Source: Lepidodermella squamata (Eukaryota; Animalia; Gastrotricha). Taken from it: a stretch of DNA of 64,000 bases. The stretch spans positions 1,116,001 to 1,180,000 of the forward strand of contig JBLDXI010000002.1 in NCBI GenBank assembly GCA_047495785.1, in the 5' to 3' direction. The notes under the pieces were generated by a model. It saw only the letters and a list, made by a program, of their open reading frames with translations. It was not told the origin of the DNA and ran no database searches. Positions 1,545-44,447 of this stretch are shown here, piece by piece (the first letter of the stretch is position 1; every line of letters begins with the position of its first letter). The translations under genes and the position numbers were made by a program.

Positions 1545-3011
1545 TTAGAGAGTTTCGTATGGCCTGGCGTAGTTGTAGTTCCCGGCCGGTCCGTAGCTGC
1601 ACACTAGCACGAAATCAAAATTTACGTTACCACACTGCGCTACAGCACATCTGTAAAGCGTGAAAAATACATTATTTAATACTTTCCATGAAGTGATAAT
1701 TGAAACTCATATATACCCAACATGCGTCGTGTTCTCCCAGACAATTTGGGTGTAGTGGCCAACCATGGAACCAGCTGGTTTGGGACCGATACCATACTCC
1801 CAGTAGTTCCACTCCCAACCCCATGAATTAATGCAATTTGACAAGGAAAGTTGTAGATTCGCATCCCCGCCACTCCAACACAGATTTTCCCCAATTGCCG
1901 GCCATCCTTTATCTTGCATTGTCAGCCAATCTTGCGGCGAATGATTCCCCGATACACTATTTTTGTTCAAACTTCGGCATTGAACGGCCCACCTCTCAGC
2001 CATGGCTGCTAACTGATCGTCCCACTTCAAGTCGGACAACGGTTTCTTCGATCGGGGATTGACATTCTGTCGCCAGCAGTTGTGCAGCTTCAAGACGGCG
2101 TTAACAGAAACAGGAATGATCCTTAGAAGATTCGCAGAGTTATCGAGACACATCAGAGGACTTTCTCCACGGAAGTTACGGCAGTATTGCTTATTTACAC
2201 TTCTGCTCATCGGACCAGATTGTTCGTCGATTTGAGCAGGACATACCGTCAATGTCAAATCGTTGGTTGGGCAATCAACAGGTAGTGGCCAGTTTGCGTT
2301 CACCCCGTCCATGCATTTCACTGATGTGTGGACTTTCCCAGATCGCCCGCCGTTCGCTGTCGAACAACAGTAGTCAGCGAAATTTGTCTTTTTCCCAGAA
2401 GAGTCTTGCTCCCACCGAATACGGCAAATGGAGCCTCCCATGATTGTAGGAGGTTGGCCGCATTCCTTAAAAACTGGTTTTGAAGTAGTGGTGGGTTTCG
2501 CAGATTCGCGGTAAGTTGCTGTAGTAGAAATTATTGGAGGTGTATTGACCGTTGAGCTGGCTTTAGACGATTGGGTGGAAGTCGTAGTGGTTTGAGATTC
2601 AGCCGTGGATGTTTCGAAATAACTTTCCGTGGTGGTTGCAACAGTACTTGCCTTGGAAGTAACAACGGTAATTCTCGTAGGAAGAGGCGAGTGAGTGGTT
2701 TCGGTTATCGCTGTCAACAATGTTGTAGTCGGCGTTGCAGCACTCACCAAAGAGTCTGATTCGCCGATTGTTAGTGGTGACACAGAAGATGTCACTGAGC
2801 CTTCGAAAATCTTCGTTTGACCAAGCCGCTGTTTAACACGATTAGCTACATGTATGTGCTGCAAAGCTTCTCTTGCCAAGTTGATATGAATGTTGTGAAT
2901 CATTCGCGCTGAGTCAATAGTTTCATAATCGGAGTTAGGAGTGGTTTGACATGCGTCACTCCTACACGCGGCACAGATCAAAGTTATTAATATCGAAAGC
3001 AAAAATCTCAT
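1545..3011 (-). CDS. Secreted CAP/SCP (PR-1/CRISP-like) protein with signal peptide and Thr/Ser-rich stalk, 2 exons
   Basis: Signal peptide MRFLLSILITLICAAC. CAP motifs LHNCWR, LKWDDQLAAMAERWA, GENL and GHYTQIVW. The spliced last exon reads GCAVAQC...LVCSYGPAGNY, with stop TAA at 1545-1547. Confidence 0.92.
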
Positions 3012-3398
3012 AGTTGGCCCGGGTTAATTAAATTCAAATAGGTTTTCTATCTGGACCTTTGGATCGGGTTCGTAAAGCGTGACCAGTGGTTAAAACTCAA
3101 AGGTCAAAACGTGAATTCCAAGTTGTTCTGCGGTCATCGTTGGTTTATTATTTGAAATATCGCAAGCTCGCTTGATACAATAACTGCAACGAGCAGGTAA
3201 ATAATAATATAATCTCAAGCGTATCGGGTGGTCGTGAATAATAATTATCGACGTTGTTGATAAAATTACACACAATAACGAATATAATAAAAAGTAGCGT
3301 GGTAAAATAGTGTTTAAAAAGTAATCCGATAGACTTGTTCGAAAATCAGCTAGATTTGCTCAGTGAATTGCTCGAGGACTTCTTCGTTGTTCAACCAT

Positions 3399-6300
3399 TT
3401 AAGCCTCCGCAGCACGACGCTGAAATTTAAAGATAAATTAACAATTCACTCTTTCAAAAATCCGGCTATACCTGTCGCTAACAGCACCGCTGATGTCGTC
3501 ATCAAATTGCTCACTTCGCGGGATTTTTCGATTGTGCTTCTTCACCTTGGCCATCGGCTTTGTATACCTTACGTAAGGATCATCATCTCCCTCCGATTGA
3601 ACCTCGTCGTCAGATTCTGAGAAGCTATCCGAATCTGACAAGTTCCTGAACGACATGTCCCACGATGCGAGTGAAGTCGTCATAGAAACAGAATCTTCCT
3701 CGCGATCAGATGGTTTTCTCGTCGTCGATGTAATTGTAGGTAAGTCCGGCTGATGAGGAGGCAGAAGAGGGACTGGCTCGACGGAATACGTCTCGACAGA
3801 GGTCTTGGCTAGATTTTTCGCCGTCTTGGGCTGAACTTGCGGATTCGGTCGAAGGTAGGTAACGTCCTGGTCGTCCTCTTCATCAGAAGTTGAAGAGAAG
3901 GACTGAGTTTGTGGTCGTTCGAATGATTCTACTGGCGGGGGTAGAGGGGCGTGAATTATTGCCGGCTTCCCAACGATTTGCACAACCTCAGCCTGATAAT
4001 AGGTGACTGGTTCGTTAGGAACCACCGCTTCGGCCGTAACCGGTTGCGGAGGAATCGCGCTTTGAGATAATGAGGTTGGCTCTGCTCTTGTGTTGTGGGT
4101 GTTTTCTTCTGCAGTTATCCTATCCTCAGCTTTTTGTTTCGGGTCAACTGATGACACGGTTTTAATGGGTCTGATGACACCCAACGTAGGTCGTGCGGGT
4201 GCAGTTGATGGCTTTATGTTACTTTCTAGTGGAACTTCCTTCCCTGGATGGATGATTGCAGGTGTTGAAGTTAAATTGATTGCTTCAGCTTGATAAGTGG
4301 GAACTGGGGTGTCCGCTTCAACTACCACCACAGACTTTTTGTAGGCCGGATTCGGAATCGTCGTTGTAGCCCTTTCTTCCGCAGGTTTAACCGGGGAATC
4401 AGCTTGTGCTTGATTTGAGCCAATCTCTGGTGTGATCTCTGGTTCAGTTGAAGATTTCACGCCGTCGCGGTTTACCGCCGGAGTGATATGAACGTTCAGA
4501 GTTTCGGCCCGATAAGTGGATGCAGCGGGCGCAACAACATCCACCGAAGCGGTAGCAGGCTGAGGAAGCTTAGGAGCATCCTTGGGCTTAACCTTCACAA
4601 CGTAACGCGGTCGAGGTGTTTGCGTCTTCCCAGATACTTCAGCCGAGACGTTTTCGTAGGTTGATGACCAGTCATCAGCAGGGGTCTCTGCAGGTTTGGT
4701 TTCGAAGACCTCATCGCCGGAATCTCCTTGCGTCTTAGGACGCTCGTGTGCCATAGCAGCTGCTACTACGTCAGGTGGTGCCTCCACGCCCGCGTGGACC
4801 ACTGCCTCGGTGACTGAGGGGACGTAGCTTTCAGCGATGACAGAAGATGGCAGCTGTTTCGGCTCAATGAAAGCAGTCGGTGTCGAAGGTTGAGCAAACC
4901 AAGACCATCTTTCGGCTTTTGGTGATAAAACTCCCTTGGAGGAGATCGATGGCTAAAAAAGGAGAGTTGAAATTGAAATGATCAATCAGTTTCAAGATTT
5001 GCCAAAATTATCTTACCCGAAAGTTGGCTGGAGACACGGGTAGGGATGACGCTAGAAACTTTGACTTCGAAGGATCGTCCTTTGGCGCTGGGGGCGGTAA
5101 AGTTTTAAAGTTGAATCTATCTTCCGATGGGTTTTCAACGTTGTTTTCAGCAGATTTTTCAATCTCTGCTATTCCTTCATCGTGAATTATCGCTTCAACG
5201 CAAGAGGGTGAATAACTGGATGCGATATAGGTCTCAAAAGGTAGCAAGCTCTCTTCCAGCTTCCCGTCAACCTGATCATCCAGTTCAAGAGGCTGATTTT
5301 CCACTTGGACAGTTTGAATGATACCGCTGCCTGCTGGCTGTTCAATGTTTACGTTGTTTACAGCAGCTGTCTCGACAATTTCTTCAGCCTCAGCTTCGTC
5401 GCTGGACTCTTCAATTCCATCTGGGTGTATCACTGCTTCGACGAAAGACGGCGAAAAGCTTGATGCAATGTAGGTGACTTCGTTTTCGACAATTTTATCA
5501 TGTTCCTCTTCATCGGGCTTTTCTTCGAAAACAGAGCTGGATCTCGAGCTAATTGATCGATCGGCCGTCATCGGTTCCGCGACTTGTTCCTTATGAAAAG
5601 CCATCCCTTGGGTCGGAGCCGCGACCACTTGAACAGGACTTTCCTGTAAGGTTTCATCTGGAGGCCGATGTTGCAGTATAGTGGCATCTTCGCCGTTGAC
5701 ACTAAGCTCTCTGTGATGAGTAATCGCCGGCGTAGTTACTACTTCTGACTCGGGCTCGAGTTCAGCAATAGCTGACTCCAACTTCTCTGCTCGAGTCATC
5801 TGAGGGGTCGAAACGTTGGTATTAGCATAGATATCTTCGTCGAATTCCTGCACTGGTTCAATTCTCCCGGCCGGTGAAGTGGCGGCAGGTGAAGCTGGAG
5901 CATCGACCGATCGTTCTCGAATGGTATCATAAAGAGGAAACCTTAAAAACAAATTTGTTGCTTAATAGAAGGACAAAAGTACCAATACTCACTCGGGCAC
6001 TTCAACATCAGGATCGTCGTAGGTCAATTTTTTGCTCTTCCTAGGGCCTTTAGAAATCGTCGATTCGCGTTGCTTGTTCTTCGCTGAAGTAGATCTTGGC
6101 ACAAGGCATGAGAATATGCCGAGAAAACCACGATTTCGTTTCTTATCTTTTTTCTTCTTTGGTACATCTTTTGCGGCTGGCACTGTTTTAACGACTTGCG
6201 GCTGGCTTTGAGGCCTAAAACGTTTGGTGTAAAAAAGCCCCAAGTTATAAAAGTTTTACTCACGTTCTTATATCGGTCGTTGCAGTCGTTGTGATAGCCA

Positions 6301-9300
6301 CAATTTCCGGAGGCTCGGAGACTTGCCTTGCCGGTGTAGCCGCTGGCAGGGACAAAACAACCTCTTGCGTAGACAGAGAATCCGGCGCTGCTTCTAACCC
6401 GCGATTTGCGGCCTGTTGACGTAGTTCAGCTTCAACCAATGAGTCTACGAGCATACCATGCCGTCTAATTGACCGCCGGCTGGAGGCCCTAGAGGATCTT
6501 CGAGATGAGGCTTTACGCACAAATCCAGACGAATGAATTGGTGAATCTATCAAATTAAAAACGATTAGACATTTTGGAGCAGTTTGCTACTCAGAAATTA
6601 CCAGGTTGATCACTCTGGCTGTGTCTTGAAGAGGGCGTTGGCGAATTTCTGCCTGTATTCTCCTCAGCTTGTTCGGTCGGTGGTGTTTTAGGCCTTTGGT
6701 TCTCAGAATCCTGCTCCCTCTCACCAGGTAAGAAATAGCCGGATGGTCGATGCTTGATTAGAGGTAACTGGAACTTCAGAGTGTCGTATGGCGATACGAT
6801 AACACTGCTAGCTGTCGAGTTAATTGAAGTTCGCTGGCCCAGAGGAATTCTAACCGATTGAGTGATATCTGTCCCGTCCTTTCCGCGCGAATCTGTTGGC
6901 GAATCTTCTCGCAACTGAACTGTTGTAGGAGATACAACAGTTTCCTCCTCGTCGTCTGAAGAGGTAGATGAGAAAGATTGGTTCTCAAGGTTCTCGTCAC
7001 TTCCACCTAAAAGAAAGCTTTGCAAATTTCAGGGATAAAAACATTTCCAAAGCATACCTTCTTCGGATTGAAATTCAAACGTTTCATGGATAATGGCTGG
7101 GATTGGTTCCAAAACAAGAACGGAAGCCACATACACTGATTCGGGATCCTCTACCTCTGGCAGAACTGATTCTTCGAATTGATCAACTTTCTCAGTTTCT
7201 GCGGGTTTGTTTTCTTCGGCAACTACAATTTCACCTGGCGGTTCCTCATCTTCAGCTTCATCAGAGCTTGAAGAAGAGCTGAATGAATCTTCGCTAGAAG
7301 AGCTGTCTGGATCAGCAGTGACTTCAAGAATTGATTCGACAGGCTCATCAAGCTTTCGGGTTTCTTCCAGGGCAAAAAGTTCGTGAACAATAGCTGGGGT
7401 ACCTTCATTCAAATTCATCACATCGGCGATGTAGGAATTCACGACTAGAGGTTCCTCGACGACTTGAGAATCAGTTACTGAATCTCGTGATTGAGGTGTC
7501 TCACTGCCTGATTCTTCGTCCGCTTGATCTGGAGGCATTAGCTCAACCCTTCGCGCCGTCTCTTGGTTAACTGATGGCTCAACGATATTTATTAGCGCCT
7601 GTGAGTATTCAGGCTTTTCGGCTGTCTCTATTTGAGGAGGAGCGCAGCTTATTCCAAGCATGTCGAGCTCAACTTCAAAATTAGCTAGAATAAAGGCTCT
7701 GGAATTGATTCGAATTGGCGAATGCGGAGGAGAATATGAGCCGATTGACGGTGGTGGCGAGCAGTTGAAAATTGTCCTCACAGGCTTAGTTTTAGTCACA
7801 ACAGGGGCAACAGTTTCCACTGGTGATTCAACAGTTTGCTGTATCGTTGGAGCAACAAAGGAATCCAGCAAGGTTTTCGTTTTGATCGCTGAATGAGCGG
7901 AAGCGATTACGCCAGAAACAAAATCGGCAGCATTTGATTTTTCATGGGACAGGTCTTCTTCGACTTGAGTTGGTTGCTCAATATCCCCTTCTGAAACCAC
8001 TGATGATGCTGATGAGCTCGAAGAGACTACTCCCGGACAAATTGCTATAACTGGCGAGGTTGGAGTTGCTTCTTCTTCACTCTCCAGAACGAACTGAGAG
8101 TGAATTATCGCGGGAATAGAATCGTGGTGGACATTTGCACTTTCAGCAAAGTAAGGTGTGATAGCTTCTTCTTGAGGAACGTCTTCAACAGATAGCTCAA
8201 CCCATTCCTCAGGATTGAACTCGCTTTTGGGAGCTTCAACAGACACTGGAACAGCCTGTTCTGTGGAGGATCGAGGCGAATCTTTCGTGTGGACGATTGT
8301 TGCATGGATGACAATGGAGGCATCCAAGTTCTCATCTTTGTTTCCAAAATCGATCAAAGAGGTTGGTTTCTCGGGCCGTTGCTCGGCTTGATCTGGGATC
8401 TGTGGAGCTTCTTCACCGAGTTCGTGAGCAGGAGCTTCGACAGACACTGAGACAGCCTGCTCTGTGGAGGATCGAGGTGTATCTTTCGTGTGGACGATGG
8501 TTGCGTGGAGGACCACGGAAGCATTTAGGTTCTCATCTCCGTTCCCGAAATCAATCAAAGAGGTTGGTTTCTCCGGCTGCGGCTCAGCTTGATCTGGAAT
8601 CGGTGTTGTTTCTTCACCGAGTTCGTGAGCAGCAACCACAGTAGCGTGTAAAACAATGCTTTTCAGGTTGTCATCTTCTGGTTCGATAGGTGGCAAAGTT
8701 GCTGGAATAGCTACCTCTTGTGAAGTCTCTATTTCGAATGGATTGGCTTCATGCTGTGATTTTTCCACTGTTGGCTCAGGAATAGTTGCCACAACGGCGT
8801 CTTCTGAGGGAATCTGGAGCTCCTCCAGAATGAAGCCAGGGTGAATTACAGCTTCAGTCACATCGATTGCACCCAGTTCTTCGGCCTTGTATGATTGAAG
8901 CCCATTCGAATTAGCGAGTTCTTGAACTGTCGGCGGCTGTGCGATGGATGGGAGTGATGAATCATCTTCCTGGTTGGAAACAACTGGCTCGACTTCGATG
9001 GGTGGCAACGTTGCTGGAATAGCTTCCTCTTGTGTAGTCTCTGTTTCGAATGGATTGGCTTCATGCTCTGATTTTTCTACTGCTGGCTCAGGAATAGTTG
9101 CCACAACGGCGTCTTCTGAAGGAATCTGGAGCTCCTTCAGAACGAAACCCGGGTGAATTACAGCTTCAATCGCATCGACTGCATTCAATGCCTCGGCGTT
9201 ATATGATTGAAGCTCATTCGAATTGGCGAGTTCTTGAATAGTCGGTGGCGTTGGTTGGGATGGGAGTGCTGAATCATCTTCGAGATTTGAAACCTCTGAT

Positions 9301-33946: not shown

Positions 33947-36900
33947 ATGGGGCCGAATTACCTTGTTCTCCTGCTGGGTAAATTTTACAAAAAAAATTAA
34001 CATTCACTATAATAAAGCAATTTTTTAGTCATCCTGTCGGCAATCTGCGATGCCAAAATTCGTTTAAAGCGCGAAAATCAGGACGATGTGGAAATTTTAG
34101 AGGAGGAGGAGGAAGACGACGACCAACCTGAACAATCTGCGTCAACCCCATTTAGCACAACCACCGGCGCACCGCCAGTTGTTAGAAAAATCTGGAATAT
34201 CGACATCGAATCGAAATTGGACGGTTTGAGCATCTCCGAGTCGCCATTTCGGCCTTATCACACCAAACCGAAAATTGTGGCTATTGATGGTGCGATTTTT
34301 TCAAGATTTTTTTACTGTGTTCCATAATCGTTGTTTTGTTCAGGACAAATTGTCGCATTTTTCTGCGCGTCAGCTTTTGAAGTCATTGCGATTGACGTCG
34401 AAGCTGGCTCAACTCTATGGCGCCGTTATTTAGAGTCAGGAAATCGCTCTTCATCATTTACAAATAAATGCCGAATCGGGTAAAATTATTATTTTTTTAA
34501 TTAACCTTGATTAACAATTCTTTTTAGATTCTGTGCTGGTGTCGATATTCACATTGACCTATCAAAAGTTAAAGCCGTGCCTAAAATCGGTAGACCAAAG
34601 TGCGACGTTCAGGTGTTCGCGATATCACCTGGTTCAGCTTTGTTCACCCTAGATGGAAGAACAGGACGAGATTGCCAAAATGCAGTGGTTCGCGCGAATA
34701 AATTTCAATTTAATTTTTAGCTAAATTAAAAAATGTCCTTAGAATCTTTTTACCGACACGCCGATTTCCATGTCGGAAGATGCGTCGCCATCAGCTGGTT
34801 ATGGTGTAACAATACCGCCTTTGATTGCCAAAGACTGGGTGGTAACCGCTATGGACACATCTCGAGCATGTAAGGCTTATTAAAGCGGTGATTTGAGTAA
34901 CAAAAATTTCATTTTTTCAGCCAACATTCGAGGTGGTTATATTGAAACCAGACTATTGGTAAGATGAAGTTATCCTTAAAAAATTATTTTATTTGAAAAC
35001 TTTGTGTTATACAGTCTAACACTTCGGTTATTGCACTTCGGAAAAGGTAGAGGAAAAAGCATCGATTTTTCAATTTCTCAATAAAATTGATGACCTAGAT
35101 ACGGAAGTGCGTTTAAAAGTCCTCTCGTTTACTCTGCTGAACTCGGTAGGTTGTTATGAATCAGCGATTATTCATCAATTTTTTACTCACGCGACAACTT
35201 TTCCACGTGCTTTAATTTTGCTTTGTGTAGATTTGATTTTCGCAATTGTCTCCCCGGCTAACTCGCCTTACGCTCCTTCAGCCGAAGACAGGTTTTCCTT
35301 CTGACTCCAACCTGATTTTTTTTAATTCCCACGCACATTTCTGTAGATTTGCAAATTCAGTTCTTGCGCTTCGGTTGCAAGATTTAACCGTTATTTGGAA
35401 TTATCGATTCCTTTACCACGATGATTTCGTCTTCGATTACCGCCATCCTCCAACTCTTGTCGAACTTGCCGACCCGGCTGGCCGGAAAACAACCTCACTT
35501 TTCATTGTAGGTTTTCAGTCCTAATAACTATCGAAACTTTAATTTCAACTTTTCAGTTGACGCCTTTCGGTAACATTTACTGGCTCGACGCAGCGACTGG
35601 GTACGAGCGGCATCAAGCTCATGTCAGGCCGCTGTACTTCGAGAAGGCAAATGAGGTCGACGAGAGGCGCGACAATTGGGTGCGCCTCAGTGGCGGCACT
35701 TTTGGCAACATTTTCAGCGACAACATTCCATCTGAAGAGACCAAATTCAGCGTAAAATTATAACTACGTTTTTAATTAGCCTCCTTAACAATTTTTTAAC
35801 AGAGATTCCCGAACTTGGAAATGCCGGACGAGGGAGTTGTAAGGCTGTCTCCTCCGGGCCTTGTTAACGGCAATTTGGTTATTGACGAAAACAGAAGGGT
35901 GGCCTATGTATCCTTTGTTCAGTCTTTATTTTGTAGGTTTTTACTAAAATTATTGTTTATTCTGATTATTCGATTTTCTATTTTTAGTTCTTGAACCACC
36001 TTCTAACGATGCGAATTCCGCTGGCGAGTGTTCAGCGAGTAGCAGTCACGTGACCGGGTGTCAACTCCCTAAACCGTTAGGCGTTGCACTTTGTCCGTTA
36101 AGCTGCGAGACGGGATTTATCGCGGCTTTAGAGGCCGGCTCGAATATGACCACCCCGGAGCAGATCAGCCTCGGCCATCAGTGGTGCGCTAATGTTTCAG
36201 AAAGCGGCGTCACTGCGATCCACCTTGACAACAGCTCAGTAGCTTGGTCATTTGCTATTACCCCAACACTGCTGCCTGATGGCCTCGTTCAGTAAGTTTA
36301 TTCCAAGTTTTTTAATTAATTAATTTTTTTTATTATTTTAAGGATACCGCAACTCCTCCATATTCGAGCATTTGACGTGCTTTTAGTGCCGCTCCTTTCA
36401 TCGATGCCGCAGCTAGGCGAAACAGTGTGGTTAGTCGATCCGTTCACGAGAGGTGAGTCATTTCTCCACAGATAATGTTCAGCAAAAAAATAACTTTATT
36501 GCGCGCACTGCAAAATTTTAAGGTAGACGTTTTTATATTTCAATAATCGCTAAATTTTATTCATTTATGTTGGCGCTTCAGACCTATTACCTTGGAATAG
36601 CAGGAATTTAAGGAATTGTACTAGTACAGTGTATTGTACTACAAGCCCATTACAGTGCGCGTACTTTGTTGTAATTTGTTATCATTGCGCGTGATTCATT
36701 GCGCTGCGCACGCGCCGTGTAAGGGGCGGAGCTTAGTCACACTATTGTTTGCACTACAACCGGGTCGATAATTACACGTGTGCATATGCAAATTTATAGC
36801 ATGGATGTGTCTTATCTCAGCCGAGAAAGGGGACCCGAAACTGAAGCGGAAAGAGTATCGCTTCTCGGCCTTTTTGGCTATGATCAAAGTGTAGTATCTT

Positions 36901-39699
36901 GTTAGCAAAACAGCTGAAAAAGTACAGGTCGACACCGCAGATGGCTGCGTTGATCGAGCGACGACATAAAGCGTTGCGACAGTACCGTTCTACGGGAAAC
37001 CCTGTGTTTCAGGCCAGGGCGGACGCGTTCTATGCTCGATTCAAAGAGTTAGCAGCCTTAGCTGAAGAGCGCAAGCACACGCGTAACCTTCAGCGGATGG
37101 AAAAGCGTAGAAGGGTAGATTCGGGGGCGTTCTTCCGGGCTTTTCGTGAGATCACAGCTGAGAGTGGGTCGGCACCAGGGCCAGCGATCCGCACCCTGAC
37201 CAACGAGGCAGGTGAGCTGGTTGTCGGTGACGCGGCCAGAGCCGAGTTGTTCCGCGATCATTACAAGTCGCAGTTGAACCCTAAGCCGAAGGTCGAGAAT
37301 GATCCAGAGATCAAGGCACATCATGCCGAGGTCGAAAGGATTGTTCAAGAGGATCGGGAGCTGTTCAACCCGATCGAGACCAAGGAGATTGACGTGAAAG
37401 TCATGATCTCAAGGGCTGAGATGAGAAGCGCGGTTCGACGTTTGAAGCTCAAGGCTCCAGGCCGTGATGAGATTTCGAACGTGCTCATCAAGAAGGGTGG
37501 GCCGGTACTTTGGGCGTATCTGCGCCATTTGTACAATTATAGCCTAGCTTGTGGGTTCGTGCCGGAGAGGTGGAAGTTGGCCGTTATCGTCCCGCTTCCG
37601 AGGTCAGGGAAGGACTTGTCGAAACCGTCAGGTTACCGTCCCGTGTCGCTTCTTCCGACAGTAGCGAAGCTGCTAGAGCTCATTTTGGCTACTAGGCTAG
37701 CTCTTCTTTTCAGGTCAAATAATATAATTCCTGATCATCAGTCTGGTTTTCAGATACGCCGATCGACGAGCGATCAAACTTTCCGATTCTCGCAGGCCAG
37801 AGCGATGGCGCGGCGTCGTCGAACGAAGATGGTGATGATCGCGGCCCTGCTGGATTTCGAAGGCGCCTTCAACGCGGTGTGTCACAACTCGCTGCGCGTG
37901 AAGCTTCGAGACTGCGTCGCTGTTCCAAGATCAATGGTGCGCTGGGTCTCGTCCTTCCTGACCGGCCGGACCTTTACGGTCAAGGTGAGTAGCTCCTTCA
38001 GTGAGACAGCAGATATCGGCTCAGGGGTTCCGCAAGGATCCTCATTGAGCCCTATACTCTTTGCCTTTTTCACAGCGGACTTGATGCCGGACAACAACAG
38101 CGACGAGCGCAAGGCCTTCACCGCTTCGTTCGCTGACGACGTGCTCTTGTTCGCTGTGGCTTGCTACACTGGGATGGCGAAGCAGCGGGTGCAGACGGCG
38201 CTGACGCGGGTCTCTCGATGGAGCAGACTCTGGAAGTTGCCGCTTAGTCCGCCGAAGTGCCAAATGCTGCGGTTTGGCGGACAAGTCAACGACGACGACC
38301 GGCTGTTTGTGGGTGACGAGAAGCTGCCGAAGGTCGCGGCGGCGAAGTACCTTGGTGTCACGTTTGACGCGATCGGGTCGTGGAAGCCGCATTTCGACAA
38401 CATCGAGGCGGATGCGCGATCTCGACTCGGGGCTCTTCGCCGGGTCTGCTTTCCGGGTTCGCCGCTTGGCTTTGCCTCGCGGAAGTTGCTGTATCTGACG
38501 ATCGTGAGACCGGTTCTTGAGTACTCCTGTGTGGCCTGGTTGGATGCGTCGTATGCGCAGAAAAAGCGCTTGATCGTGCTGCAGAACAACTGTTTGCGGG
38601 CGATCATCGGCTCGTCTATTCTGGACAAGCAGGACGAATCTGAGCTCTACCGCCTAACTGGAGTGGAGCCGCTGGAACGCCGCTGGCTGAAACTAGCAGT
38701 CGGCTTTGCTGATCGGGCTTTGCAGTTCGTGCCACCAGTCGCCGCCATGATCGCCGACCATCGTCGAGAGTGGGGCGTGGCTGGTACCCCGCTCGGACAG
38801 TTCATCAATTTTGTGGGCCGTTAGGCCTTGTCTATCTATGTATGTATATGAGCATCAGTCAGTTTAATACAGAAAATAAAACAACAAAAACCCATACACA
38901 ATACACATATATACACAAAATAAAATAAAAACAAAACCACATTAGCCCTGTGCCACGACTGTAAATGAGTGTGTGCGTTGTCATATATATTTCTTGTTTT
39001 TTATAAAAAGATGAAACGCATAACATATGCTGTTACTGTTATTAATTGCTGCTATTTGATATACTTGCTACTATTGTCGGTCAAAAGTTGTTAACAAGAG
39101 ACCGTTTTTCCAATAAAACAAGACCGTTGGAAAAAAAATGTAGTATCTGTTCTTTGTAGTTTAATATCTACAACGGCCTCCATGTGGGGCCTACGATATT
39201 AGCCCTATTTTTGGCTAGCCGGGCGGGAGCAGCCAGCTTGCTGGACCCCGTCCACGAGTCGGCCCGGTATTGCAGTACCTCCGGGATTCGGCTCACCCCC
39301 TGAAAAGGGGGATTGAAACTAAAAACAAATAGCCAGCTTAAAAAGTGTCTTCGCACAGGTATCAACGTGGCGAGGATAGATGACGGAGAGCTGATAATCG
39401 AGTCTGATCAAATCATCAAAGACGACGTTATTCACTTTGCGAAACTGGTCGCGCTCAGCGATTTATCGGCTATCAAAAGCAACACCCCCGATGCGGTCAT
39501 TTCCGACAGATTGGCCTCCTCAATTTTGCTCTATGGTGAGGGACATTCGTTCTCGAAATCTGGAAACGGCAAACAGCCTGCGACAAGGACCAACTTTCAC
39601 ATTTCTCTTCTACGTCTGGCTGATAAATCGTCAGCTGCTCAGCTTATTCCTCATTTGCATGTACTTCCCATCATTTTTTCGGCTCTTGTTTTGAGGTGA
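33947..39699 (+). CDS. Secreted, probably GPI-anchored PQQ beta-propeller protein homologous to bacterial quinoprotein glucose dehydrogenase (Gcd), 15 exons
   Basis: The frame stays open across 14 GT-AG introns. Signal peptide MGPNYLVLLLVILSAICDA. Gcd-like blocks: FCAGV..KCDVQVF...LFTLDGRTGRDC, YGVTIPPLI, and YSAELDLIF...EDRFANSVLALRLQDLTVIWNYRFLYHDDFVFDYRHPPTLVEL...GNIYWLDAATG. Hydrophobic C-terminus SSAAQLIPHLHVLPIIFSALVLR*. Confidence 0.82.
36723..36856 (+). promoter_or_regulatory. Putative U2 snRNA promoter (GC box and octamer)
   Basis: GGGGCGGAGC at 36723-36732 and a perfect octamer ATGCAAAT at 36786-36793, directly upstream of the U2 +1 at 36857. Confidence 0.55.
36857..36899 (+). ncRNA. 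U2: U2 snRNA gene, 5' part (nt 1-43), interrupted by a LINE
   Basis: ATCGCTTCTCGGCCTTTTTGGCTATGATCAAAGTGTAGTATCT is the canonical U2 5' end, with stem I, the U2/U6 helix region and the branch-point-recognition sequence GTAGTA. Confidence 0.97.
36899..38824 (+). CDS. LINE ORF2 C-terminal part (reverse transcriptase), uninterrupted; endonuclease lost by 5' truncation
   Basis: KAPGRDEI, YRPVSLLPTVAKLLE, QSGF, LDFEGAFNAV, GVPQGSSLSP, FADD, KYLGVTFD, then the Jockey-type tail RKLLYLTIVRPVLEYSCVAW...LQNNCLRAI. No C-terminal RLE or RNase H. The start codon in the ORF track is a TTG at the junction. Confidence 0.94.
   Translation: MLAKQLKKYRSTPQMAALIERRHKALRQYRSTGNPVFQARADAFYARFKELAALAEERKHTRNLQRMEKRRRVDSGAFFRAFREITAESGSAPGPAIRTLTNEAGELVVGDAARAELFRDHYKSQLNPKPKVENDPEIKAHHAEVERIVQEDRELFNPIETKEIDVKVMISRAEMRSAVRRLKLKAPGRDEISNVLIKKGGPVLWAYLRHLYNYSLACGFVPERWKLAVIVPLPRSGKDLSKPSGYRPVSLLPTVAKLLELILATRLALLFRSNNIIPDHQSGFQIRRSTSDQTFRFSQARAMARRRRTKMVMIAALLDFEGAFNAVCHNSLRVKLRDCVAVPRSMVRWVSSFLTGRTFTVKVSSSFSETADIGSGVPQGSSLSPILFAFFTADLMPDNNSDERKAFTASFADDVLLFAVACYTGMAKQRVQTALTRVSRWSRLWKLPLSPPKCQMLRFGGQVNDDDRLFVGDEKLPKVAAAKYLGVTFDAIGSWKPHFDNIEADARSRLGALRRVCFPGSPLGFASRKLLYLTIVRPVLEYSCVAWLDASYAQKKRLIVLQNNCLRAIIGSSILDKQDESELYRLTGVEPLERRWLKLAVGFADRALQFVPPVAAMIADHRREWGVAGTPLGQFINFVGR
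36900..39138 (+). mobile_element. 5'-truncated non-LTR retrotransposon (Jockey/I-group-like) inserted in U2 snRNA, with 10-bp TSD and A8 tail
   Basis: RT ORF to 38824, AT-rich 3'UTR, AATAAA at 39112-39117 and A8 at 39131-39138. TSD TGTAGTATCT at 36890-36899 and 39139-39148. Confidence 0.96.
39139..39298 (+). ncRNA. U2: U2 snRNA gene, 3' part (from nt 34 to the end)
   Basis: TGTAGTATCTGTTCTT, stem IIa TTGTAG-TTTAATAT-CTACAA, stem IIb GGCCTC..GGGCC, Sm site ATTTTTG at 39207-39213, stem III, and stem IV with loop ATTGCAGTAC. Confidence 0.97.
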
Positions 39700-41051
39700 A
39701 AATAAAAATTATTTATATTACGCAACAAAACACGTGAGAAAACAAGCTTTTTTATTACCTCTTGCAGCAACAATATTATTATTCTTCCATTTTTTATGAT
39801 AATAAAACGACTTTGTACAGATGGCTGAATCCGCCATTTTTAATACAGTCGATTCAGTTCGCAATATAATAATCGTAACAGTAGTGTTAAAAATAGAAAA
39901 GTATACATTTTTCACGTTTTGTTTTTTCCGAAAAGAGAAGATTGACCATCCGGCGTTATCATGTCATACAAAAACACAGCCATGCGCTTCAAAGGGCGAT
40001 TGAAGACTAGGCGGAATTTCGTCCGAGAGAGAGAAACAACTCGTGATGATATATATTGTACATTACAATAACGGCGGTCATGGCTCAGGAAATTATCAAG
40101 TGTATTAAAGCAAGGCTCGAGCAGTCGCTTCTTTCTTTCACAGCGAGAGAAATGGGACTTTGATTTGCATATCAGGAGCAGGCTACATCTTAATATTGTT
40201 ATAAAAACAGAGGAAGCAAAACAAGCAGCTGGTTTCATGTGACACGGAAACAGCATCGGCAAAAAGCAGCGTCGCGATTGTTCAGCTTATTATAGATGAA
40301 TTTGATTTCACTCGTTTCCAGCAGATCCTAAAAGAAAACAATAAGGAATTGAAAATTTGAACTCCTATTTCTAAAATAATCTAGCTTTAAAAAACTACTG
40401 GTCTCCTTCTGCCGACTTCTGCCTGATTTACCACTGACCCAGTTTAATAATATTCCGAAATTGATGACGACTCTGTTGAAAGAGCTAATTATTTATGTGA
40501 ACATCGCTTTTGCTGGAGATTTCTGTAGCCGCTCCTAGCGGATTTCCGACCGATCGCGCCCGCGTAGCCCGATCCCTTGAGTTTTTGAGCGCATCCGATT
40601 TTGCGATGCCCTTAGACGTCCGCGGCCGCCCCGGCGACTTAGCATTTTCGCGTGAATTTTTCTCAATTTCGAGATGTAGCTTCGACCCATGTTACAGCGC
40701 GGGTATACTTGATAGCTCTGCTAGAGCTATTTTGCTAAAGATGGTATACACAGTCGTTTTCCTCAGTGGTGCGGCGCTTTTCGCGACCGCTGTTGTCAAT
40801 AGTCGCTTTTTGACTAATGCTTGTGATAGTGTTCTGTCTCACGGACATTTTTGTTTCCTGTTTGTTGTTCACCCAGGTGAACGCGAACTTGTAAAAAATC
40901 ACGGAAAAACTGAAAAAAGTGACAGTAAAATTGGTCTAAGGAAAAAAGTCAGGCGTAGCGAGTCCGGCCGCAGGCAAGAAGATTGCGACGAAGAAGCCGG
41001 TGACGAGAGGAAAAGAGCAGGAGGTAGTTATTGAGAGTAGCCTAAGTCGGC

Positions 41052-41082
41052 CTTCTCGGCCTTTTTGGCTATATCAAAGTGT
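41052..41082 (+). pseudogene. U2: Second U2 snRNA 5' fragment (nt 5-36, 1-nt deletion), promoterless
   Basis: CTTCTCGGCCTTTTTGGCTAT-ATCAAAGTGT is identical to 36861-36892 apart from one deleted G. The upstream flank is unrelated to the U2 promoter. Confidence 0.88.
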
Positions 41083-42445
41083 TTTAACGCAAATTCGGAT
41101 TATTCTGATATTGCTTCATTTGATTTGATAAAAGTAGCATTGCTAGCACTCCTCTTACTATTTGCTGCCTTATCAAGCCCTCTCTCCTGAGATCGCGAGA
41201 TAGGCTTCTTATAGTATAGGCGTAAGCTATTAATGTTCTTTCACACCGAGGTCTAGCGTACTTCGCTTCGTCCGAGTAACTCAGGGTTTGGGCATTCCCT
41301 CTCCCTGCATGAAAAGCGAAGCCAGTATGTCTGGACTTCATAGGGGCGTAGTAGTTCGTTCCACCGAGATGAGCTCTGACTCTGATCGGTCGGCCCGTTC
41401 AGCGGGCAAGGTCAAGCCTTGCGATTGCAAGCAAGTCCATCGGACGGCCACTGCTTCGCGAGGAGTCCCCGAAGCCCTTGGTTGGATCCTTGAAGGGCCC
41501 CAAGTTGGCAGAGCGATGCTCCCCTGTCCGGCTCCGGCTGGAGATCCTCGTTGATAATGAGGGACTGTTCACGGTTGTGGCGTCAAAGACTTTGTCGTCT
41601 TTGTCTTTAGGTTCAATCATTTCAGTTACAAACCTTCCGCTTTCTGCGCTGGTTCTTAATATATACCAGTGTTTGCGCCGTAACATCCTCCAACGGAAAA
41701 GCAACAGGCCGTCTTTAAGGTTCTTCCTTAGTTCTTTCTACGATGACCCGACGTGGCCATTCCGATCGGAAAAAGGATTCCGACGTCGAAGAGCGCGTCA
41801 AAAGAGTTGAGGATTCGATGCGAGGGGTTAAAGGCACGATTGATCAAATGCATGAAATGCTCGTCATTCTGACTAACGAAAACTAACGATCAACCCCTAA
41901 CCACACATTGCAGCGCAAGACTGGACAACGCCTACTTAAAACCGAGTTTCCTTCAACTTTTTTTATTAGGGATGGTTGGGGTTTATTTCGGGCTTTGTGG
42001 TTCCGATTTGAATGTTGCTTCTGATTCTGCTTGCTCGCCAATGCCTTCTGCTTGGGTGAGCGACGACGTCTTTGTTTTTTCGGGCCCGCTTTCACTGACG
42101 AAGCCTTCTGCAACGGCAGTAGTAGCCGCTCCAAGCGGAAAGTGGCCTGTTTTTAACTACCTATGCTTTTTTCGCTTTTGCGGGCCCTCTGCTGAAGCAA
42201 AGTTTGCCGGGCTAGACCCGAAACGTCATCGCGAGCTCACTGCGGTCTCACCTGAGGCCAAGATCACGAAGCCGTGGATTTGTCGCTGTGGGGCACTTGG
42301 TTTGATGTGCAAGGACGCCGCGACTGTTAAGATGCTTCTTACGCGCAAAGGCTGGCCTGCGTCTGCGTTCAGCGGCAACGCCCGGCCGCGTCGCCCGACG
42401 TCGTTTGATTACAAGGACTTCGACCCGGAAATAATGAAGGCGGCA
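41083..42445 (+). mobile_element. Decayed retroelement-like segment (possible LINE 5'UTR plus frameshifted ORF1) fused to the U2 fragment
   Basis: GC-richer than its flanks, with no intron signals. Broken coding-like pieces: MSGLHRG.. at 41327, a coiled-coil-like KGTIDQMHEMLVILTNE, and KPWICRCGALGLMCKDAATVKMLLTRKGWPASAFSG. Family assignment is inference. Confidence 0.45.
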
Positions 42446-42922
42446 GTAGCCGCTCCTAGCGGATTTTTACCTTTTGCAAGTGCTCTCTGCCTCAGCAGAC
42501 ATGTTTATTGCTAAACATATTCTTGTAGACTTCGTTGAAGCCTTCAATTTGCCTATGCAGTCGGAACTATTTACGACGGCTAGATTAGTGTTTTATCACA
42601 TTACAATTCTGGACAGGACCCAATTTCGTGTACTCAGCAAACTCATTCTATGCATATCTCTACCAACCTTTCATCTACACAGCGAACTATTGTCCGCGAA
42701 TATGGCTTTATTGCCCTGGCTAACATTTCAACAACGAAACTAGCATAACTCGGCTTGAAATTTTGCAATGGAACTGCATGGAGAATATTCGAAATTGTTC
42801 AAAATTTTTAAGCTGATTTGTGCTAATTATTTGTTGACGGCAGGGCTTAAAATCTTAACTTGCAATTTCCCTGATAATATAACGGTATGTAAACCTTTGA
42901 ACCCATTTGATTAGTATCTGTA

Positions 42923-44447
42923 CTAATCTAATAATTCAAATTCGAACAACTTACCATAGCCATTATTATTGCCATTCGGAACGATAGGTGTGAAAGAAGA
43001 CGCAGACTGGTCGCCCAGATTGACCAGTTGCCCAGTTGTTATAAGCTGCTCGGTGGATGGTACTCGATGCGACATCGAAACCTGCCCAGATTCCAAATCA
43101 CTAGCCGAAGATTGCGCACGGAATCGGCACGGAAATTTGATGCCATCGACCGTGCTCGACGGAACAGGTACCAGCCACAGCTTCGGGTCATTGCCGAAAA
43201 CTTGGCGCCAGTTTTCAGCGTACGTAACACGGTAGCCGCGGCGATCTGGGCCGTTTTGGAAATAGGGCGGGTGGAAACTTTCAATTGTCGATTGGTTCGT
43301 TAGAGTCAGGTAAATGTGGTAGGAGAACAACGCGAACACGCTTAGAGCGAACATTAACGCGACGAAAAACACGAACAGCACGTTGAATTTGACTAACGAG
43401 GAAACATTGTCCCCATACGAGGTCTGCAAAAAAATTTAATTTTTTTCAAAAATCGAAATATTTTGAATAAAAAACACTCAGTGAACGAAATCACGCGCAT
43501 GCTTAAACAAATTAGGGGATTTTTTTAAACGCACTGGAGCAATTCTTGTTGAGGAATTATCTATATTTCGAAGTTCGTTCATGATTCCGTAGTATTGATC
43601 GTCCTGTTTCGATTTATCATTAAATTAATTACCCCAAATAAAATTTTGGAAATAATATTAAGGTGGAATTATCGCGAATTAAAACATACCGTCCATATTT
43701 GAACGAAAAATGGAGCCGTCGATAAGGCAACGTAGAGGCAATAGACAATCGCATAGAATAGAAACAGCATGAATAGCTTGTAGTTGGACCATCCAACCGT
43801 ATTGTTAACCCACGGGCAGTAGTGATCCATCTTAAAAATTACAAAAATTAGCAAAAATTATCTTGAGCAGTGGTAAAATTACTTTTAAAACACATTTTCC
43901 AATGACACCGCAGTGGTGAGTTCGATCGGGCTTGCAGCACTGACACTTGTCACAGAATCGAGTGCTGCCGTCTACGTTGCGTTGAGCCACCGGGAGGGAT
44001 CGTGCGAAATCAGCCAGCATTCGCCGCCGTTTATTCGCGTCATTTTCAGAATAGTAATTCATGATTAAATCGGCTGACGGGTAAAATTCATCCGGAACGC
44101 CGGCTGGGTCGCTGAAGATTGTGCGGTAGTAGACGAACACGAAAGTGATGAAGAAAATGTGGAAAAATATCAAATAGAAGACTATTGTTACGGTGTCATT
44201 GATGAATCCTGAAACAGACAATCGCAATATTTTCAAAAAATTCAGCGAATTTTCGTAGCTTACCAAAACATAGATTAACAACATAAGCGTAGTAAGACCA
44301 CGCGACTATTGTTGAGATGAAAGCTGGAGGAAACCATCGGCAGACTCTGAAACATGTGTCCTGGCATGTGTTGAGCTTCGACTTGCTGCTGCGAACCGAA
44401 GTTGCAGGGCAGTTCGGCCCATTCGCCGGTCTTGAAGAACCGTTCAT
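42923..44447 (-). CDS. Palmitoyltransferase of the ZDHHC2/15/20 family with a DHYC variant motif, 4 exons
   Basis: TM1 [19 protein letters not shown], the cysteine-rich domain [24 protein letters not shown]|[20 protein letters not shown], the TTxE-like NQSTIESF, and the PaCCT-like [17 protein letters not shown]. Confidence 0.92.

Follow-up and report, generated by a model that had tools for sequence, protein, structure and literature searches.

Results

Organization of the U2 sequences in the window

The window, i.e. the whole stretch of 64,000 nucleotides of Lepidodermella squamata DNA that we analysed, harbours one real U2 snRNA gene (36858-39301). It is interrupted after U2 nucleotide (nt) 43 by a 2.2-kb LINE of a family named R here, and restarts at nt 34. 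The target-site duplication TGTAGTATCT flanks the family R insert at 36890-36899 and 39139-39148. Rfam gives one match to the whole U2 in the window (39101-39301), and the U2 tail word TGTAGTATCTGTTCTT has a single occurrence, at 39139. The 20-mer CTTCTCGGCCTTTTTGGCTA is found at exactly two positions, one in the head of the split U2 gene (36861) and one at 41052, where shuffled sequences lead to an expectation of 0.00. The split gene and the second U2 head comprise the following features:

36858-36900, plus strand: 5′ part of the genuine U2 gene (nt 1-43), with the upstream promoter region before it (direct read; exact 20-mer at 36861)
36901-39138, plus strand: copy of LINE family R, 5′-truncated, with an A-rich 3′ end; RT ORF at 36899-38824 (RVT_1 match)
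39139-39301, plus strand: 3′ part of U2, from nt 34 on (Rfam U2, 118.6 bits; sequence read)
41052-41082, plus strand: element-borne U2 head, nt 5-36 minus G26 (direct read, exact 20-mer, alignment)

The second head lies 1.75 kb from the surviving U2 gene. Compared with the U2 of this species, its last bases are ...AAAGTGT, which are followed by TTTAACGC. A first-pass annotation of the window had described a promoterless second U2 piece of nt 5-36 at this place, and apart from the one missing base, G26, this description is accurate. The TGCATATGCAAAT-type box found about 70 nt 5′ of real U2 genes in this genome is absent from the 100 nt upstream of 41052, and these 100 nt match the ORF1 region of another LINE at ~80%. 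An Rfam search of 39400-43400 did not find a U2 3′ half downstream of the second head, the sole match being the head itself (16.9 bits, 41048-41183). Further downstream, the 12-mer TAGTATCTGTAC at 42912-42923 agrees with U2 nt 37-48 in 11 of 12 bases and adjoins the first exon-like ORF of a minus-strand gene. This resemblance is probably due to chance, as Rfam sees no U2 tail and there is no further U2 similarity.

A broken copy of LINE family B

By alignment, the region 41047/41052-41553 represents the broken 5′ portion of a LINE family B element, the fourth copy of this family known in the genome. The sequence 41052-41553 is 96.4% identical (504 nt) to positions 2438-2939 of locus L013, which holds a full-length copy, and to its two twin copies. 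Besides the head, the fragment consists of:

41047-41051, plus strand: extra bases TCGGC before the head (alignment)
41083-41308, plus strand: family B 5′ untranslated leader, 226 nt (identity to L013 and its twins)
41309-41553, plus strand: first 81 codons of B ORF1, open, with the ATG at 41309, broken off at 41553 (tblastn, alignment)

The window copy has the arrangement that defines family B, a U2 head joined to TTTAACGC and then the leader and the start of ORF1. Its ORF1 shows 96.6% identity in tblastn over amino acids 1-88, numbered from an upstream TTG. Past 41553 tblastn finds neither further B ORF1 nor any B ORF2 in the window, and neither the APE nor the RT domain lies within the fragment, which has no promoter and only 81 codons and is thus dead. 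The first-pass annotation had estimated the leader at about 245 nt and had read a frameshifted ORF1 up to 42445. Both have to be corrected: the leader measures 226 nt, and 81 intact codons extend to 41553 and are followed by pieces of three other families.

The bases TCGGC(T) 5′ of the head are shared by the window copy and one of the full-length copies, C51 (TCGGCT; L003 2003-2008, minus strand), in unrelated contexts. They do not occur in the other two, C15 and C116.

Full-length copies of family B

Family B is a 5.4-kb LINE with APE and RT domains and three full-length copies, referred to by their contigs: C15, which lies in a U2 gene, and C51 and C116, which both lie at the putative spliced-leader (SL) RNA gene in the rDNA spacer. 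The three are mutually identical over their first 510 nt. ORF2 of C51 and C116 is essentially identical to that of C15 (100% when rounded, 99.9% on partial loci), and ORF1 is identical over amino acids 1-588. All three open with U2 nt 1 or 3 to 36, followed by the same body sequence, and the head of C116 starts at U2 nt 1. The junction AAAGTGT/TTTAACGC (the slash marks junctions throughout) is identical in the window, C15, C51 and C116 copies. While the window copy has diverged by ~3.6% from these young copies, its head/body junction is unchanged. The expectation that head and leader represent the 5′ end of a LINE is borne out by these copies, which run on into a gag-like ORF1, APE and RT. The window fragment likewise proved to be an older copy, as had been supposed, given its divergence from three mutually identical copies.

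ORF1 of family B encodes a gag-like protein of 715 amino acids, in which inspection by eye reveals three Cys/His (CCHC-type) zinc-knuckle motifs, the first alone being an exact CX2CX4HX4C; a Pfam search of ORF1 gave no hit. ORF2 (925 amino acids, L013) matches PF03372 Exo_endo_phos at amino acids 6-213 (E=3.4e-9) and PF00078 RVT_1 at amino acids 531-771 (E=1e-27). As judged from these domains, family B is a two-ORF non-LTR retrotransposon with an AP-type endonuclease. A PDB sequence search with the APE domain alone returned nothing significant, and no Rfam ribozyme was found in L013. The leader sequence gave no match in the literature either.

The C15 copy is inserted in a U2 gene, and its locus (L013) reads in the order U2 promoter region, host U2 nt 1-41, a second U2 segment of nt 3-36, TTTAACGC, leader, ORF1 and ORF2. 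At its 3′ end the sequence ...GTTGGCA/AGTGTAGTATCTG leads into U2 from nt 32 to the end. The two copies in rDNA, C51 and C116, end in ...GTTGGCA/GGTTAGTATCATC, where the flank is the intron side of an SL-type gene. C51 shows the order SL leader, 270 nt common to copies of a further family (D), TCGGCT, full-length B and SL 3′ part. A query composed of the upstream flank and the SL tail of C51 found no match to an uninserted site; the flank is the 270-nt block common to D copies, which resembles the SL gene intron. At C116 (L002, G000:C116:23524-26992, 1924-2010) the head abuts the first bases of antisense 28S (...ggtatgt/ATCGCTTC). The SL 5′ part, 18S, 5.8S and spacers are all absent from this locus, an arrangement due either to extensive loss of DNA during integration or to an assembly error. 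Since the contexts of C51 and C116 are rDNA arrays, misassembly is possible for both. With two of the three full-length copies outside U2, the term 'U2-specific' is too strong for family B.

In the whole 121-Mb genome, exact 20-mer heads outside U2 genes number four, and all are B copies (the three full-length ones and that of the window). A variant head word, CTTCTCGGCCTTGATGGCTA, occurs in eleven dispersed copies (G000:C7:2480312, C9:391328, C11:1704969 and eight more), which may belong to a family of variant U2 genes or to a different repeat with a head.

A patchwork of LINE fragments around the B copy

When 41084-42445 was used as a query against the animal's own 121-Mb assembly, four unrelated match sets were obtained and no locus spanned any of the junctions; a single repeat covering 41084-42445 was rejected on these grounds. 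Only 41084-41553 matches family B, with three genome loci at 96%. Intact copies had been anticipated by the first-pass annotation, and three U2-headed elements with APE and RT do exist, but they account for this segment alone and their RT is not that of the window's family R. The B copy is not inside a U2 gene and sits among fragments of three related families, designated R′, D′ and C′ here after the families R, D and C that they resemble:

40525-41046, plus strand: 5′/ORF1 fragment of an R-related LINE (R′), directly 5′ of the head (blastn 80-85% to R copies, L018 1501-2284 and L028 8354-5902)
41554-41637, plus strand: spacer, weakly similar to the family D 5′ region from ~41563 (alignment; no genome match)
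41638-41907, plus strand: 5′-region fragment of a D-related LINE (D′; 81% to L027 5239-4965 and at least six other rDNA copies)
41906-42140, plus strand: one unit of the R-type ORF1 ~246-bp subrepeat, its last element the motif CCGCTCCAAGCGGA (73-75% to subrepeats in L017-L021 and L028)
42223-42442, plus strand: ORF1 fragment of a C-related LINE (C′), amino acids 191-261 (88-89% nucleotide and 87% amino acid identity to C ORF1, L023/L005)
42450-42463, plus strand: third copy of the R-type motif CCGCTCCTAGCGGA, at the right edge of the patchwork (motif search)

At the protein level, the piece at 40525-41046 is 72% identical to R ORF1 in tblastn and starts at the motif CCGCTCCTAGCGGA (40529), and that at 41906-42140 shows 56% amino acid identity to R ORF1 232-298. 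The arrangement is unique in the genome; all pieces lie on the plus strand and all derive from 5′ regions of four related LINE families. No close family copies exist by which the R′, D′ and C′ pieces could be dated. No remnant of a target (U2, U1 or SL) was found flanking the 40525-42463 patchwork. The short palindromic motif CCGCTCCTAGCGGA is present at three patchwork boundaries in the window (40529, 42126 and 42450), and each ~246-bp subrepeat of family R carries it twice.

Families R, C and D

The reverse transcriptase within the split U2 gene belongs to family R and is 51% identical to B ORF2 at the amino acid level (36899-38824). The window copy of R shows 98-100% nucleotide identity to at least 39 other copies, nearly all of them on small rDNA contigs, and dozens of rDNA copies reach 100%. 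A full-length R element (L028, ~7.9 kb) starts in the SL gene at ...GACTGCT/ATTTGC with a 26-bp duplication and without a U2 head. The suggestion that the second head belongs to the same element as the RT at 36900-38824 is therefore not upheld: that RT is of family R, only 51% identical to B ORF2, and the R 5′ end is headless. In the R 5′ region (L018 3-3348) a single long open frame of more than 1100 codons runs through the ~246-bp subrepeats.

Family D is a LINE located at the SL gene, ~1.35 kb upstream of 18S, with ORF1 and ORF2 downstream in L027; its ORF2 is 28% identical to that of B. In D, and likewise in the C51 copy of B, a block of ~270 nt separates the SL leader from the element body (L003 2006-2262, minus strand; L027 5330-5800, minus strand). 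This block is similar, at lower identity, to the intron part of the SL gene itself and may be an SL-derived captured head of D, an analogue of the U2 head of B.

Family C occupies snRNA genes on C10 (U1) and C19 (U2); in the latter, the U2 head extends to nt 26. The full-length copy in U1 (L023, G000:C10:2542000-2551500, 2259-7085) is flanked by ...ACTTACCTGGCA/ and /GATCATGAAGGGGGCC..., with ~13 nt of U1 missing, and eight clustered tRNA genes are found immediately upstream. We considered whether tRNA genes beside C copies are tRNA heads and rejected this, as the tRNA on C19 is a neighbour of the U2 promoter and the C10 element lies in a U1 gene. In family C a match to zf-CCHC has E=0.026; RRM_1 reaches only E=0.1.

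Insertion sites in U2 and SL genes

On the 5′ side the junctions of these elements with U2 fall at nt 43 (window, R), 39-41 (C15, B), 36 (a stub in the U2 gene of C42) and 26 (C19, C), while the 3′ flanks of four insertions resume at nt 31-34. The internal end of the B head, nt 36, lies within this 26-43 junction window, in agreement with the earlier observation that the head stops at AGTGT inside the target region. The C42 U2 gene (L025, G000:C42:720500-729000, 7924-8145) is interrupted after nt 36 by only 23 nt, CAATAAAAATTCGGAGCGTGCCA, and AAGTGT is duplicated there. By its sequence the insert looks like an extremely 5′-truncated LINE 3′ end of this group.

The comparison of both target genes shows that B, R, C and D nick a 5′-splice-site-like word, AAA/GTGTAGTATC in U2 and GAG/GTTAGTATC in the SL gene. 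The uninserted putative SL gene reads ...TTTTCTGAG/GTTAGTATCATC, also read as GGTAAATATCTGCGATTGAATATTAAATTTTCTGAG/GTTAGTATCATCACC, and is present in 346 copies with the spacing of rDNA units. R and B reside mostly in this SL gene of the rDNA spacer, and independent insertions at the U2 site are found in C15, C19 and C42. Uninserted rDNA units repeat every 8,459 bp. At L029 (G000:C89:48000-56499), the rDNA unit has a 5S gene directly after 28S, on the other strand, and the SL gene precedes 18S by ~1.3 kb. The U2 genes, ~47 in 121 Mb, are clustered in the genome (C15 array). By simple arithmetic, the chance of the fragment lying no more than 2 kb from one of them is ~0.2%.

Origin of the U2 head and of the patchwork

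The window head could in principle be an ordinary truncated U2 retropseudogene that happens to lie beside unrelated repeats, as a short promoterless U2 5′ piece in repeat-rich surroundings might suggest. snRNA retropseudogenes normally retain the 3′ part or a poly(A) tail, but neither is present at the window piece. Moreover, the next 470 nt co-occur with the same head at three other loci, where they continue into a complete LINE. The first-pass annotation had named other copies of the downstream element lacking a U2 head as the finding that would speak for a retropseudogene; all other B copies turned out to be headed. We regard this explanation as extremely unlikely.

It is also very unlikely that a second host U2 gene, interrupted by an insertion and subsequently deprived of its promoter, left its 5′ half in place as the head. 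U2 genes are clustered here, as in the C15 array, and the fragment lies just 1.75 kb from a real one. However, the head/body junction corresponds base for base to the element-borne junction of the other B copies. A B element inserted in U2 shows two tandem heads, whereas the window has one, which lacks nt 1-4, and R-type ORF1 sequence (~80%) instead of a U2 upstream region extends up to 5 nt from the head.

The identical junction in all B copies implies that the element inherits its head, which was most likely acquired a single time through read-through from a U2 start site. As the junction is the same in four copies, it goes back to a single event, and that of the window is not an independent targeting event; two independent U2/element junctions, which the first-pass annotation had seen here, are thus not present. 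Since the young copies are identical and the window copy is 3.6% diverged with the same junction, the capture predates their split.

We consider it probable, from the arrangement of the copies, that the B head was captured by co-transcription from the U2 start site; for the broken B front end in the window, serial homing is the most likely history. An ancestral B element would have occupied a U2 gene, joined to it at nt 36 on the 5′ side, and, as suggested by DNA structure, would have been transcribed from the start site of the U2 gene itself. Complete reverse transcription could then carry the U2 head into daughter copies, which would have inherited it since. The DNA footprint of such co-transcription would be the tandem heads in C15 and the head from U2 nt 1 in C116.

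Alternatively, the head may have been added by a template switch from the 5′ end of an ancestral B RNA onto mature U2 snRNA, with the product becoming the master copy. Switching onto snRNAs is documented, L1/U6 chimeras being products of this process. It has also been proposed for the U1/U2-derived 5′ additions in the crocodilian SINEU (PMC4494074). The 5′ joining of B is indeed untidy, as seen from the junctions with other sequences in C51, C116 and the window. A switch would be expected to start at the U2 3′ end or at an arbitrary internal point, but the U2 part stops at nt 36, a position inside the 26-43 window and identical to the junction of the C42 stub (chance estimate ~18 in 190). The head also reaches U2 nt 1 in C116, as a start-site transcript would. 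Together these points make the template switch unlikely compared with co-transcription from the U2 start site.

The serial homing included in the favoured reading may account for the patchwork. Related LINEs would have homed repeatedly into the downstream copy of one target, now lost, 1.75 kb from the surviving U2 gene, and each newcomer, on joining at its 5′ end, would have removed the body of the preceding element, leaving a chain of same-strand 5′ fragments. Precedents for the removal of upstream DNA at the 5′ joining of B are provided by the C51 and C116 copies. Serial template switching in a single insertion was rejected as the main model, because the ends of the D′, R′ and C′ pieces do not coincide with RNA 5′ ends.

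A more far-reaching proposal would be that the head is a selected working part of B, and that the chain at 40525-42463 represents four LINE families which serially homed into one snRNA-type gene and destroyed it. We regard this combination as rather doubtful. If the head were functional, it might for example anneal the cDNA end to U2-like targets for 5′ joining or give the RNA an snRNA-like 5′ end.

Discussion

LINEs that reside in multicopy RNA genes serve as models of safe-harbour integration and of the way in which a parasite borrows a host promoter. The group described here is of the APE type and homes to a 5′-splice-site-like word common to the SL gene and U2, with one member also in U1. 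In one of its families, B, 36 nt of U2 have become a fixed component of the element. The older window copy with its identical head indicates that successive retrotranspositions, among them one to a non-U2 site, have passed the head on. The contribution of the window is modest, an older broken B copy and its patchwork context, and it adds no independent case of U2 targeting; the patchwork shows how such targets may wear away.

PMC4640811 and PMC4494074 describe Keno, after Kojima and Fujiwara 2004, as a Tx1-clade APE LINE that targets U2 snRNA genes. Family B resembles it as an animal LINE with an AP-type endonuclease that is found inside U2 genes, in the branch-point-pairing region. According to PMC4640811, Keno and Utopia both leave U2 from nt 39 downstream. 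In contrast, U2 resumes here at nt 31-34, which corresponds to a nick 5-8 nt further upstream in a U2 with one extra T. A further difference from Keno is the gag-like B ORF1 with its three Cys/His zinc knuckles, and the group resides mostly in the SL gene and not in U2.

No L1/Tx1-type C-terminal zinc finger was found by Pfam in B ORF2 (925 amino acids). The short ORF2 lacking such a finger may point, at the level of sequence, to the Jockey/I/R1 group. In elements of the R1/Jockey/I group, ORF1 contains RRM-type domains along with three CCHC knuckles in its C-terminal part, and ORF2 has APE and RT and no RNase H. The Atlas neighbours are arthropod proteins, some with PRE_C2HC or zf-CCHC (scores under 0.9).

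Utopia has a single ORF, whereas B has two ORFs and an APE domain and gives no RLE hit. Both systems share insertion into U2, several families per target and the frequent loss of upstream target sequence. Utopia is a U2-targeting LINE of the RLE type with a restriction-like (PD..D/ExK) endonuclease, and in Phytophthora the upstream U2 is lost on its integration (PMC4640811).

With R2 and R1, family B would share the reliance on host-gene transcription, with its own promoter not evident and with target sequence at the 5′ end of the transcript. The self-cleaving ribozyme of R2 removes the 28S leader, which is not inherited, while in B 36 nt of U2 persist as a heritable head. Its host promoter would be an snRNA-type Pol II promoter and not a Pol I promoter as for R2. 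NeSL-1, CRE, SLACS and CZAR insert in the spliced-leader RNA gene, which is also the main target of B, R and D; the former encode a restriction-like endonuclease and the B group uses APE. A text search of the available literature found no description of an SL-targeting LINE of the APE type, which may nevertheless exist elsewhere.

A likeness in the structure of the 5′ end, a U2 5′ fragment on a retroposon, is seen with SINEU. These non-autonomous crocodilian elements, thought to be mobilised by Tx1-type LINEs, carry U2 5′ fragments of ~32-36 nt as heads that are attributed to template switching, and have no known internal promoter (PMC4494074). The legend of figure 1B in the same paper refers to U1/U2-derived 5′ sequences aligned for some Tx1 families. 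U2-targeting LINEs, dependence on host transcription (R2) and heritable snRNA-derived heads (SINEU) are thus already known. What is new is their combination: in contrast to SINEU, the head of B sits on an intact autonomous APE LINE, is heritable, and ends at the U2 insertion site of that LINE group itself.
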